DNA from: Octopus bimaculoides
Lineage: Eukaryota
DNA length: 44,516 nt
NCBI RefSeq assembly: GCF_001194135.2
Contig: NC_068981.1
Span: 152,149,103 to 152,193,618, forward strand
Direction: 5' to 3'
Part shown: positions 1,519 to 37,500 of the stretch, piece after piece
Layout: each line of letters starts with the position of its first letter
Position numbering within the stretch: the stretch's first letter is position 1
Program-made: the position numbers and the translations under genes
Notes under the pieces: generated by a model
What the model saw: only the letters and a program-made list of their open reading frames with translations
What the model was told of the DNA's origin: nothing
Database searches by the model: none

Positions 1519-1548
1519 CAACAGTAGATTCAACATCAGACGGTTTTT
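1519..1548 (-). CDS. micro-exon class A: [10 protein letters not shown]
   Basis: 30 nt, tttAG|AAAAACCGTCTGATGTTGAATCTACTGTTG|GTGAGT. Confidence 0.9.
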
Positions 1549-4500
1549 CTAAACAAAATCAAAGCAAAATACAATAAGCACGTTGCTAACGTGCGAAAAG
1601 ACGCATTTGTAAATCTAGTGTTTCATAATTAATCAGTTTTGATCGTTTATTACGCATTTGCGACGCTGATACTTCGATTCTTTAACAATACATATGCTAA
1701 CTATATTTCATTGAAGCATGTTTACGCCTGTCATATATACTTTCCTAATAATAATAATCATAATAATCATAATAATAATAATCATAATAATAATAATAAT
1801 AATAATAATAATAATAATAATAGTAATAATAATAATATATGAGAATCATTGAAGTAATTTACGAATGTTTTTAAATATATTAATTTACAAGAAAACTAAA
1901 AATTATTCACGAGAATAAACGGCAAGTATAAAATATATTTTAAAGATATTATGGTGTTATAGCAAAGGTGCTTACCTATGCGAGATTCGGTTTCTCTAAT
2001 AATTTCTGTGAAATTCAAAACGCATATCATTAGCTTTCTCTTTCACCATTATGCAAAGAAACAATTCTTAAAGTTTCGATTAATTAAATGTATTAGAGAA
2101 ACTGTACATAAATAATAATCTGTATACGTTTCTATCATTTCTTAAGTATCACTTAAAAACATTATTTGGAAGTTTGATATTTAATATTTGAGGATATATT
2201 GTAAGTCATACAATATAAAGGCCAATTATAATTCTTGTACTTCTCCCAATATAAATGATAAATAGAAAATTAGTAATCAATGTTATACTATTAAAAACAG
2301 TAATATCAGACTTGCTAAATTTTTCTGGAGTCAAATTAGAAGACACTTACCAACTGTGGCTTCAGCCTCAGAAGGTTGTTCTGAATATGGAATAAAAGAT
2401 GATGTCATCAGGTTTTGCACCATGTACAAATATAATACAATACAATATGGGATAGATAGTTTTAAAATTTAAATGAATACTCTAGTTAGATATTTGTGGA
2501 AGTTTGATAACTAATCGTAACTAAATGATTACGAAGTAATTTCAAACGCAATACATTTAGAAAGTATATTATACTATTCTATATTAATTGCACATCATAC
2601 ATTACGGATACTCATGAGAATGTGTATTGATATATATGTGCGAGTATATATATACATATATATATATATATATATATATATATATATATATATATATAGA
2701 GAGAGAGAGAGAGAGAGAGAGAGAGAGAGAGAGAGAAAGAGAAAGAGAAAGAGAGAGAGAGAGAGAGAGAAAGAGAGAGAGAGAGAAAGGGAGAGAGAGA
2801 GACAGACATATGTATATACTGATTTGTGTGTGTTTTGATACTGATATTGGTATTATTACTTAAATTGAAAAAGATCTTTTCGAAATAATTACACCGATAA
2901 TCTAAACTCAAGATATTATCGTAAACACAAGTTCGCTCACCTTTAGGGCGCTCGTCTTGTGTCACAATATCTGTGAAAAGAATTGAATGAAATTACAGTT
3001 GATTTGTGTGCATTGTTGAACAGCCAAAATCGTTATTTCCACTAATATGTAAACATAAACTTTAGTATTACTCTTTCTCTGGTACACGTCATAGTTGGGA
3101 GAAAGCTTGTTTCAAGGGATTTCAGTATTATTTCAGTATATGTTTGCGGCCCATATTACAGCGCATAAAGAAACATTCATTCAAATATTACTGTACTAGC
3201 GAATCAATATGCATATATTCAGTCTCAAACGAGCAACTAAATAGCAAATGATAGTACTCGCTATTTTACGATGAACTAAAATTGAAAATTGTTAATGTAT
3301 TACATAAGGATATCTTCAAGGTATAACATTCAAATGCGATGAAGCAACACACCATTCAAGAAAACAGTTAAATACTATCGTTATATATTAAAAATTCTAT
3401 TATTGCTTAATGGCTCCTGTTTTCTTTTCCAGTAAAATATATGTTCCACTATAACTGTATATGTATTTCATAAATTATCAATAGAATCTTTGAGTTTAAA
3501 ACGTTCATACCAAGTTTTTAAATGAAAATTAGAATCAAATGATTTGTATACTTTACGATTTGAATAGATTAACTATCGTTGGAACAAACTTAGCCTTTCT
3601 TACACCACAGAATACAACAACTACACAAGAATAGATGAAAATGTCTAAAAAGGATGTCAGGGATAAGCAGAAACAAAACATCACGATGAAAATAAGCTCT
3701 CACTCACCAACTGTAGATTCTACTTCGGAACGTGTTTCTAGTGTAAAGTAAACGCAAATATATAACCCGATTAGTTACACCATACATAAAAAAATTGATA
3801 ACTATCAAAAATATTGAGAAAATTGATTATTACCCTGTGGTTTTTAAAAAACCTTTCTTTGCAAAATATTAATTTGTGTATACACCCCACCCAAAGCACC
3901 AAGTTACTAGAACTGGAAATATTTTAATAAATGATGTCTAAATTGAGAGATATAGAAAATATGATAGCATTTTAGTACAGGAACATAACGGAAGCAGAAG
4001 CTTATTAAATTTATGCGGATATGTAGCGTGAATAACGTTTCTTTCTGTAGCTTACCTGTGCGGGTGACTTTCTCTGTCACGACTTCTGTGAAATTAACGA
4101 AATATATAATTAAATATTTCATAAAATTTCTTATAACACAATGTATAATTAGGTTTCAATTATTCCTGAAAATGCATTTACATGCTTATCGGATAAATTT
4201 CTTAAGTTTTTATAGAGGGTGTATATACATAAATACTCTAACAGCTGTAAACACGTATTCATTAGTTGCGATGGATGCAGTATTAGTTTAACATTATCGA
4301 TTTGCATACATATTGAAGATGTGAAAGCCTTCTAAACTGTAGTATTCGTCTAAATAGCCATATTGTTTTAAAATCACAAAAGTATCGGCAGAATGTGGAG
4401 GTAATGAAATTGCTAGGTCCGCATTTATGCCTGTTAGTTTCATCACGAGCAAGCATCCACGTCACCTCATGTAAAGTAAACATCGAAATGGAAAATGAAA

Positions 4501-34500: not shown

Positions 34501-37500
34501 TATAAGTATATACCGCGATATGTCGATCTAACCGAGGAGCCACCTATTGAAAACACGAGAAACTAATGTGCCTCGTATACAGTACTTTAGACAACAGAAT
34601 CGCGAGTCAAACGTAGTTGAATGCATGGAGGTGCGTGTTTATGTATGTATGCGTATAAGTGTAAGTGTGGGTGCATGTTTCTGCTGATGGATGTGTGTGC
34701 TTTGTTACTGCAAGAAATTGATACTGACATAATAATTCAGGATTAAAGTGAGACTACATAAAAATCACAACTGATTCGCTACATATATAATCGAGCAAAA
34801 TATTCATTAGAATTTAGACAATATCTTGCACCATTCATTTTAAAGATGTATTTTACAACCTAGTTCAGGGGTAGTCTTCGGTTATTTCAAAAATATAAAT
34901 GAAAAGGAAATAAAGCAAAAATGTAATTATGAAAAGCAGACAAACGAAGTAATTGACACCAGATATAAGTTAGAAATGTACGAATTTTTCAAGGAAAATA
35001 AATTTCTTGAAGAAAAAGCGCAAAGCAAATTAAAAATTATGCATACGTAGCCATTTTTGAAGTCAGAATTACTAAACGTCATGTTGTCAATATAAAATTG
35101 ACTTAATATACAGATATGTTCTAAACGTTACATAATATTCAGTTCAACATTGCTTAGCACAGTCGGGCCGTTGTAACTCCATAGTTTATATTTCTAATAT
35201 TCCCTATATTTATTCCTTATATGAACAGGGAAGTCAAACACTGAAAGCGTGCAAAATTATTCCTAAGTAGACTCACCAACTGTAGATTCAATTTCAGATG
35301 TTTTTTCTGAATGAAACAAAATACAGTACAATGAGAAAGTTGCAGAAATAGTTCATACATAAACACAGATTTGTGTCTAAAATTGTTGAAAAAGTTATGT
35401 ATATAAATATAGTATCGTTATGTACATAAATATTGCATTTGTATTATGATACTCATAATAGCATTTGTTATCTTTACATCTAATATCATGGATTAATTGC
35501 ATCAGTAATATTTCCTGGGTATATTTTCATATATTCAAAAGGAAACTATGTGCTTACCTATTCGAGATCCCGTTTCTTTAATAATTTCTGTGGAATTAAC
35601 AACAGGATCAGTTAACTGTTGTCTTTATCAATTCGTAAACTAAATAAAACTTCCAATATTTATCACTGAATTTACACGGAAATATACGTCAGCAAACTTT
35701 CATGTTAATTACTGTACTCTTACATACCATGGAGAACATGATTTGATATTGAATATGTAATATGTATTCACATAAGATATAGCTTACATATTAGTTCGTA
35801 ATTAGATAAATTATGCTATTAATCTTTATCCTAATGAAAGTAATAACAATAATTATATTGACATACTAATATAATTTTATAGAACCTAATTAGGAAACAC
35901 TTACCAACTGTGGTTTCGACCTCAGAAGGTTGTTCTGAATATGGAATAAAAGATTATGATAATAGAGAACTTACGTCAAATAGAAACAGATGAAAAATAT
36001 ATATCTAAAAATATTTTGTGATTGCCTTGCCTACACTTCGAATTTTTACGAGCGCGTGTGTATTTATCTACACACACAAATACATGCATACATACATGTG
36101 TGTGTGTGTGTGTGTGTGTGTGTGTGTGTGTGTGTGTGTGTGTGTGTGTGTGTGTGTGTGTGTGTGTGTGTGTGTGCGTGTGCGTGTGCGTGTGTGCGTG
36201 TGTGCGTGTGTGTGTTTGAACATATATATATATATATATATATATATATGTTCAAATTATTAAGATTTATAGATGATGATTTTGAAAAAAATTACATATC
36301 CAAATTATATTAAGTTTCAGGCCTATTGCTATAATATCGCAATATCTGAGAAATTAATCAAATGTATTGCAAATGATTCTTACAAACTTATGCATATTTA
36401 ATTATCAATGATATTGAAATGATACATGATAAAAGTTAATTTTAGAATTTATTACTGTTTACACGGTACACGACAAATTTGTGTGAATCACTTTTCTTTC
36501 AGCGTCAGACTTTTCTTTTAGGTGCATTGTTGAACAGACATACGAGCAAATACGCGTTGAAATCATTTAAAACATTCATTTTAAATATTATAATTTGGTA
36601 ACTCATAAAATCAGCAATGTTAATTTTGATTCTTGGCAACATTAAATCTAATATGCATTTATAAAATGAATGAAAAATCATCCAATATATTTGGGAATAT
36701 ATTGGTTGACTAAATAATTCGGTAAATCGCAACAAAAGCTACACGACATTCACGTTTCAATACGAACATATTTATCAAAGGTCACACTATTTATTACATA
36801 GTGAGTATGATATGAAGTTGCATTGTATTAAAATGGCGTATATGTTTCTGATTTCTCAACGAAATCCTTATGTGGAAAAATAACGTGATTTTTTTACTAC
36901 TAATACATTAAATGAAAATTAAATTTTACTGTAACACATAATCGACTAATAGAATAGAGCGCATACTATCCTTCTCATATGTAACGAAGCAAATTTTCCG
37001 ACTATAATTAACAAGAAACGATAAAATGACATACGAAGACATCGAAGTGACACTGAGCAACAAGCACAAGCAAGGAAGTCATTTAAGAATAATCTCTCAC
37101 TCACCAACTGTAGATTCCACTGCAGAAAGTTTTGCTAATCAAAGGATAAAGGCAAATATATTTCCATCAGATTAATCGCATAGGGAAAATAATACCGACG
37201 AACGCTAAATATACGAAGGTGGGCTGAAAAGTTCATAGGCTGTCAATGAAGGAGTGACATCTTGCATACATTAATTTCAATACTTCTTAATAATAACTGC
37301 ATTGTTTTTATCCGGGTAAACTGAAACCTGACTATTCAAAGTAACTAGCAGCAACTTCTCTTGAAAATGGGCAAAATTTTGCACTGTGGTGTTATGAAGT
37401 ACATGCAGAAAAATGATCTGATCCCCAAGGAAATTCATGCCAACGTGGTTGCTGCATTAGAGAATCAGTTCCGGTTTTAACAGTGCTATAGTAAGCAGCT

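Follow-up and report, generated by a model that had tools for sequence, protein, structure and literature searches.

A fixed-order array of ten-codon microexons in Octopus bimaculoides, a candidate PEVK-like spring or spacer segment

What kind of gene would carry dozens of exons only ten codons long, arranged in a recurring order over tens of kilobases (kb)? This question is raised by a stretch of 44,516 nucleotides (nt) from Octopus bimaculoides (RefSeq assembly GCF_001194135.2, contig NC_068981.1, forward-strand positions 152,149,103 to 152,193,618), referred to here as the window and numbered from its first letter, in which a preliminary description had reported a nested repeat of 30-nt exons. 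We put the probability at roughly 0.7 that this repeat is an array of cassette exons within one large animal gene, encoding a disordered, acidic part of a giant protein that serves as spring or spacer, most plausibly a PEVK-like segment of the titin/connectin type.

The array was detected with a relaxed scan (AG, 30 nt, GT), which recovered every exon of the preliminary description, and a strict scan ([CT]AG ... GT[AG]AG, open in phase 1). The strict scan returned 43 candidates of exactly 30 nt on the minus strand and none of that length on the plus strand, with at most seven candidates for every length other than 30 nt, and an nhmmer profile of the exon and its flanks gave matches on the minus strand only. 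The array on the minus strand contains 41 intact 30-nt exons and two of 24 nt (43 in total), separated by introns of 251-5244 nt. Every exon is bounded by a conserved AG acceptor and GT[AG]AG donor of its own, and the length of the exons (30 nt or less) together with these canonical splice sites places them among the microexons. All 43 are of phase 1/1, starting with codon positions 2 and 3 and ending with position 1 of the next codon. Spliced together they give a single open frame, with no stop in 425 codons compared to 29 and 54 stops in the other two frames, and none of 5000 shuffles of the spliced sequence was open.

The pattern of divergence between exons of the same class (the classes are set out below) is that of coding sequence. 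The proportions of synonymous (pS) and nonsynonymous (pN) differences within classes are 0.34 and 0.089 (pN/pS 0.26), and the minimum numbers of changes at codon positions 1, 2 and 3 are 18, 17 and 45. Within-class identity, 0.83 for exon sequence and 0.94-0.95 for splice sites, falls to 0.36-0.40, approximately the background level, by 40 nt into the introns. Insertions and deletions (indels) are abundant in the flanks and absent from the exons, which have a G+C (GC) content of 41.5% compared to 31.6% for the window. Because of the low pN/pS, the excess of third-position changes, the lack of exonic indels and the conserved splice sites, the array is a set of coding exons, predicted to be spliced, that have been under long-term purifying selection in this open frame.

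The exons fall into classes designated A to I, with e24 denoting the 24-nt exon. From high to low coordinates, the exons, their remnants and the units that they form are as follows.

42875-42904, minus strand: exon G, 30 nt, phase 1/1, paralogue of the exon at 25451
42525-42548, minus strand: exon e24 (DRPRAETI), 24 nt, phase 1/1
42167-42196, minus strand: exon I
41051-41080, minus strand: exon H, a derivative of class A
40206-40235, minus strand: dead F-like exon (EIV*KYVTRI) with an in-frame TAG and a weak donor
39872-39901, minus strand: diverged E-class exon, splice sites intact
37105-37134, minus strand: diverged E-class exon
36316-36345, minus strand: dead D exon (DIAIL*) with in-frame stops
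35905-35934, minus strand: exon C
35558-35587, minus strand: exon B
35277-35306, minus strand: exon A
30263-33025, minus strand: complete F-E-D-C-B-A unit, 30-nt exons at 32996, 32449, 31878, 31435, 30650 and 30263
27700-27729, minus strand: exon F
27351-27380, minus strand: exon E
25451-25480, minus strand: exon G
24634-24657, minus strand: exon e24 (DRPHAETI), 24 nt
24308-24337, minus strand: exon I
23369-23398, minus strand: exon H
21493-21522, minus strand: degenerate B-like exon, candidate live or dead, frame open, donor ending in C
21188-21217, minus strand: A-class exon
18161-18190, minus strand: exon F
17893-17940, plus strand: inverted upstream intron flank of the E class, 85% over 48 nt, between F at 18161 and A at 17452
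17452-17481, minus strand: exon A
13492-15895, minus strand: complete F-E-D-C-B-A unit, exons at 15866, 15532, 14755, 14283, 13910 and 13492
11603-11624, minus strand: possible 3' fragment of a dead F exon, a weak match (expect value, E=0.94)
11271-11300, minus strand: dead E exon, acceptor AG lost
6862-8247, minus strand: F-E-D-C, exons at 8218, 7857, 7280 and 6862
6596-6695: gap of 100 N in the intron between two C exons, whose adjacency is putative
6166-6195, minus strand: second C exon, identical to that at 6862 at 30 of 30 positions, flanks diverging beyond about 40 nt
5786-5818, minus strand: dead B exon, both splice sites lost
5415-5444, minus strand: exon B
5049-5078, minus strand: exon A
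1519-4085, minus strand: complete F-E-D-C-B-A unit, exons at 4056, 3708, 2941, 2351, 1976 and 1519

These classes and their order are far from what chance arrangement would give. Exon identity is 0.85 within a class compared to 0.49 between classes, and when the intron flanks are compared on their own (30 nt on each side) the nearest neighbour is almost always of the same class. The preliminary description had named the failure of exons to cluster by position in the unit as the outcome that would overturn it; when this comparison was run, exons did cluster by unit position and their intron flanks did likewise. By its flanks, each of the diverged exons at 39872 and 37105 belongs to class E and the exon at 21188 to class A, from which exon H is also derived. 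The two superclasses proposed earlier (F, D, B, G and I versus E, C, A and H) alternate at 37 of the 42 junctions, and the order F>E>D>C>B>A>F is followed at 29 of the 42 (mean of shuffles 4.7, maximum 15); not one of 100,000 shuffles equalled the observed alternation or the observed order. Most breaks in the pattern have their explanation in dead remnants or in a single inverted intron scar, in keeping with the earlier view that most of them coincide with such remnants or with gaps.

Some elements of the preliminary description need to be extended. It had placed the array at 1519-37134, where an array is indeed present; upstream, however, it does not stop at 37134 but continues to at least 42904 through an E-like exon, a dead F, H, I, the 24-nt exon and G, and it reaches both ends of what the window shows. 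While the exons listed earlier are real members, the two 24-nt exons had been overlooked. These (42525-42548 and 24634-24657) have the same splice sites in both copies (ctag/gtgagt), are separated by three synonymous and one nonsynonymous change, and by their position between G and I bring back the alternation of superclasses. The three complete F-E-D-C-B-A units stand, and the 60-residue unit quoted earlier corresponds exactly to 4085-1519, but a fourth unit at 8247-5049, complete except that C is duplicated across a gap and a dead B is present, has to be added.

How did such an order arise? Self-BLAST aligns about 50-490 nt around the exons at 67-95%, mostly as islands of 50-150 nt per exon, and some alignments cover whole introns (e.g. 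1945-2416 against 13879-14350, 69.5%). Two intron homologies pointed out earlier are borne out, as 1316-1370 and 4787-4850 have a common block that includes a 15/15 match, and the introns beside B at about 13950 and 35605 lie within an alignment of 13900-14346 with 35548-35966 (67% over 454 nt). Since intron stretches still align between units, exon blocks were copied together with their introns, and long ago. The units are now 2.3-7.6 kb long and pS between them is 0.34, as expected for old copies. Growth of the six-exon tier by duplication of exon blocks with their introns is thus supported by these alignments, by the clustering of intron flanks according to class and by the conserved class order. 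Likewise supported is an additional tier, absent from the preliminary description, in the form of a duplicated block of about 17.5 kb: G-e24-I-H and their introns (24286-26160) match 42145-43914 with 71-78% identity and an offset of about 17.5 kb.

The preliminary description had proposed growth from monomer to dimer to hexamer, and for the stages before the hexamer the sequence carries less. A dimer stage of 20 amino acids (aa) is plausible, resting on the similarity of exons within superclasses (identity 0.69-0.80 for E/C/A/H and 0.43-0.67 for F/D/B/G/I) and on the acceptor flank common to superclass 1 exons, ttaatttcacag; no intron homology survives between different exon pairs. A single-exon stage would be a weak proposal: in-register profile identity is 0.383 compared to 0.269 +/- 0.045 with permuted columns (p ~0.008), a difference partly forced by splice-site and glutamate-codon bases. 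Gapped pairwise identities computed with 100-nt flanks have means within a narrow range (0.60-0.78) and give no consistent sister units. An intron patch approximately 100 nt upstream of B exons (ATATTTCCGTGTAGATTCAGTGATAA-like; e.g. 14020-14050, 35660-35690 and 30750-30780) is conserved above its surroundings, and could be either residual homology or an intronic splicing element.

The later history of the array is one of birth and death, in which introns diverged nearly past alignment and some exons died through loss of splice sites or acquisition of stops. The array contains six or seven exons that are dead or degenerate, and four exons (E-D-C-B) are missing between F at 18161 and A at 17452. 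The inverted E-class flank at 17893-17940 sits at exactly this place and is a scar of the inversion/deletion that removed them. The only sign of homogenisation is a single identical pair of C exons (6166-6195 and 6862-6891), which match at 30 of 30 positions and at 94% in the near flanks, with introns that otherwise do not align beyond about 40 nt. We considered an allelic or assembly duplicate as the source of this pair and rejected it because the copies are unalignable beyond that distance from the exon. The pair could have originated by gene conversion, by local duplication, or through a scaffold join in which a B-A-F-E-D unit is left out.

The gap between these two C exons is one of five in the window (6596-6695, 11981-12054, 12893-12902, 28939-29619 and 41543-41951), all of them intronic and at least 166 nt from the nearest exon. 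Four of the five adjoin (AT)n or (GT)n runs (edges at 12055, 12903, 28938, 41542 and 41952), and the gaps are typical short-read breaks rather than structural boundaries. Since all exons are divisible by three in length and of phase 1/1, the reading frame is independent of what the gaps contain.

The predicted product visible in the window is 410-426 aa long and consists of 25% glutamate, 15% threonine, 15% valine and 10% serine, with no cysteine, methionine or asparagine. The 410-aa version has a net charge of -66, contains 59 S/T-x-x-[D/E] sites of the CK2 type, and has four glycines with no Gly-X-Y periodicity of the collagen kind. The spliced product is predicted to be disordered because its mean hydropathy lies below the Uversky boundary. 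Proline, glutamate, valine and lysine (P+E+V+K) make up 0.50-0.53 of every 250-aa segment, which exceeds the 40% used to delimit PEVK regions, and with threonine in place of lysine (P+E+V+T) the fraction is 0.60. Current gene models seem not to include the microexon array, and in the literature on cephalopod microexons, molluscan PEVK regions and the TTN-1 PEVT region we found nothing specific to it.

The closest known parallel to this combination of architecture and composition is the PEVK region of titin, whose short, repetitive and alternatively spliced exons have undergone block duplications and triplications and have been overlooked by annotators (PMC6469411). The criterion of more than 40% P+E+V+K has been used to map such regions across animal titins, and molluscs have titin-type genes with PEVK-rich parts (PMC12063666). 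Like the array described here, the PEVK region of vertebrate titin (TTN), including its PEVK-C block, consists of dozens of short cassette exons of the same phase that encode a disordered chain rich in glutamate and valine, with multi-exon blocks copied together with their introns and a P+E+V+K content above 40%. The PPAK exons of titin are roughly 75-84 nt long, compared to the 30 nt (10 aa) of the exons here. The octopus array also differs in having no PPAK motif, in being rich in threonine and serine and poor in proline and lysine, and in that its blocks are ancient rather than near-identical; in addition, no Ig exons flank it within the 44.5 kb in view, so that membership of the titin group is putative.

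Among invertebrate relatives, the PEVK region of insect projectin has small, alternatively spliced exons, some of only 24 nt, and a divergent sequence (PMC3835035), while that of Drosophila Sallimus lies mostly in very large exons (PMC12063666). The PEVK-like segments of projectin, Sallimus and TTN-1 resemble the octopus product in being divergent in sequence and defined by composition, and projectin also in its small exons; the octopus product differs in having no sequence similarity to any database protein. By composition, the PEVT region of Caenorhabditis elegans TTN-1 is comparable. Elastin offers another parallel, as two exon types, hydrophobic and cross-linking, alternate in its gene, all junctions are of the same phase, the exons are cassettes and the product is elastomeric and disordered; its composition, however, is of Gly/Val/Pro/Ala and Lys-Ala type, its exons vary in length and they follow no six-exon order.

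The 5' mini-exons of fast troponin T (TNNT3), on which the acidic variable region of that protein is based, are very short, acidic, of the same phase class and combinatorially spliced, and are thought to have originated by exon duplication or shuffling (PMC2447309), but they number only a handful and form no higher-order unit. More generally, tandem duplication is a common origin of symmetric exons encoding disorder (PMC3632108). The preliminary description had likened the array to satellite higher-order repeats. This holds for the fixed order of monomer types and for the position-specific similarity (0.85 against 0.49), as in alpha satellite; it does not hold for contiguity or homogenisation, since the exons here are non-contiguous islands between unalignable spacers of 251-5244 nt and the array is not homogenised. 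It is also kept by coding selection and not by turnover. Block-duplicated arrays of cassette exons, as in titin PEVK and similar genes, are the better comparison.

It is because this architecture and composition match the PEVK regions of titin and projectin that we propose a cassette spring or spacer. The window lies inside one large minus-strand gene, with the same-phase microexons in their fixed six-exon order predicted to encode a disordered and strongly acidic chain rich in glutamate, valine, threonine and serine. This chain would act as an extensible spring or spacer, most plausibly as the PEVK-like part of a molluscan muscle protein of the titin/connectin type. Since all exons are symmetric and of the same phase, any subset could be skipped without change of frame, and exon skipping would then set the length of the segment in steps of 10 residues.

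Several observations weigh against this proposal. Splicing and any exon skipping are themselves predicted from sequence, unit counts are minimum estimates, and continuity across the five gaps is putative. Proline and lysine account for only about 5% each, which makes this a Glu/Thr/Val/Ser-rich chain unlike classic PEVK. Protein homologues were found neither with a 180-aa query at 1e-3 nor with the 426-aa query at E<=10, for which 3787 word-sharing candidates in a collection of 5.8 billion protein clusters were searched; no titin, sallimus, projectin or TTN-1 homologue matched at E<=10 in this collection. A Pfam scan of the product (E<=1) returned only a spurious match to Intimin_C and no PPAK (PF02818), a search of the PDB with the product gave no match, and no Ig, Fn3 or kinase exon is present in the 44.5 kb (stop-to-stop open reading frames of at least 75 aa, both strands). 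The titin-like identity is an inferred one.

These same features lend themselves to a serious rival, in which the identical cassette-microexon array would belong to a non-muscle protein. Candidates include an acidic phosphoprotein that is secreted or part of a matrix, a protein resembling mucins and an acidic nuclear or nucleolar protein of the Treacle/Nopp140 type, whose repeats would provide multivalent motifs for phosphorylation, ion binding or spacing instead of forming a sarcomeric spring. The 59 CK2-type sites in 410 aa, the 25% glutamate and the strong negative charge would suit such a protein, as would the lack of a PPAK motif and of any Ig or Fn3 exon within 44.5 kb, and Treacle and the SCPP family are examples of disordered proteins built from tandemly duplicated same-phase exons (PMC3632108). 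However, no signal peptide, basic alternating segments or serine-rich tracts were seen, the P+E+V+K fraction of 0.50 is that of a PEVK region by the operational definition, and the best-documented arrays of dozens of very short same-phase cassette exons are those of muscle spring proteins. We therefore consider a non-muscle identity rather unlikely.

Whether the array is still in use is a separate matter. The six or seven dead or degenerate exons, the unit gutted by rearrangement, the two E-class exons (39872 and 37105) that have lost the acidic motif and the lack of annotated protein matches are what would be expected if this were a relic, once coding but now an unexpressed and decaying pseudo-array. 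Against this, 43 exons retain their splice sites, exact length and open frame while the introns have reached background within about 40 nt, and the pN/pS of 0.26, the third-position excess and the number of intact exons require long-continued selection after the duplications, which leaves a relic very improbable. Even less credible is the notion that there is no gene at all, but only a dispersed non-coding repeat, transposon fragment or assembly artefact that mimics exons by chance. The five assembly gaps and the identical C exons on either side of the 100-N gap could be cited for it; it is contradicted by the restriction to a single strand, the exact 30-nt length, the one open frame and the codon-position bias, as well as by copies too divergent to be assembly duplicates (introns at most 78% identical and mostly unalignable), and the two transposon fragments that do occur, one of RVT_1 and one with a weak match to GIY-YIG, are intronic sequences with no relation to the array.

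The introns and their surroundings carry a number of further features. The DNA is AT-rich (GC of about 31%) and contains abundant (AT)n, (GT)n, (AG)n and (TAA)n microsatellites and five runs of N, and has the look of animal DNA assembled from short reads; an (AT)n run closes the window at 44464-44516. Scans of the window for tRNAs and against Rfam gave no matches. Transposon fragments are found in the introns. In the 3-kb intron between A at 21188 and F at 18161 lies a reverse-transcriptase fragment of a non-long-terminal-repeat retrotransposon (18933-20090, minus strand; Pfam RVT_1, open frame of 386 aa), in the orientation of the gene; the closest named relative of this long interspersed nuclear element is from Argonauta hians (53% identity). 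Within the decayed 5.2-kb intron, a 111-aa open frame (9407-9739, minus strand) has a weak match to the GIY-YIG nuclease (E=0.0012, under the Pfam cut-off) and is probably the remnant of another mobile element. Beside a gap in a long decayed intron, a 95-nt unit is repeated 1.8 times at 85% identity (12104-12276), unrelated to the exon array.

A more specific version of the proposal, which we offer tentatively and regard as doubtful, is that the gene is unannotated and encodes a giant protein specific to the cephalopod lineage whose extensible segment consists wholly of ten-residue microexons, more than 43 of them in the window, organised in four tiers (10 aa, 20 aa, 60 aa and about 17.5 kb), so that exon skipping could adjust the spring by quanta of about 3.5 nm. 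Under this four-tier scheme many further exons of the array would probably lie beyond the window. If it is true, this would be a finer and more regular spring than titin PEVK, and may relate to the unusual extensibility of cephalopod muscle.

Titin PEVK, projectin, elastin and troponin T already provide examples of short same-phase exons, block duplication and birth-and-death. An apparently unannotated array of this kind is of value for annotation and for the comparative biology of muscle, and offers no new mechanism. Arrays of this sort escape protein databases, and the lack of any match in 5.8 billion clusters suggests that molluscan giant elastic proteins are probably under-annotated in precisely the parts that matter mechanically. 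If expressed, the octopus array would be a very regular case of a disordered spring or spacer that is built and resized by the duplication of exon blocks together with cassette splicing.

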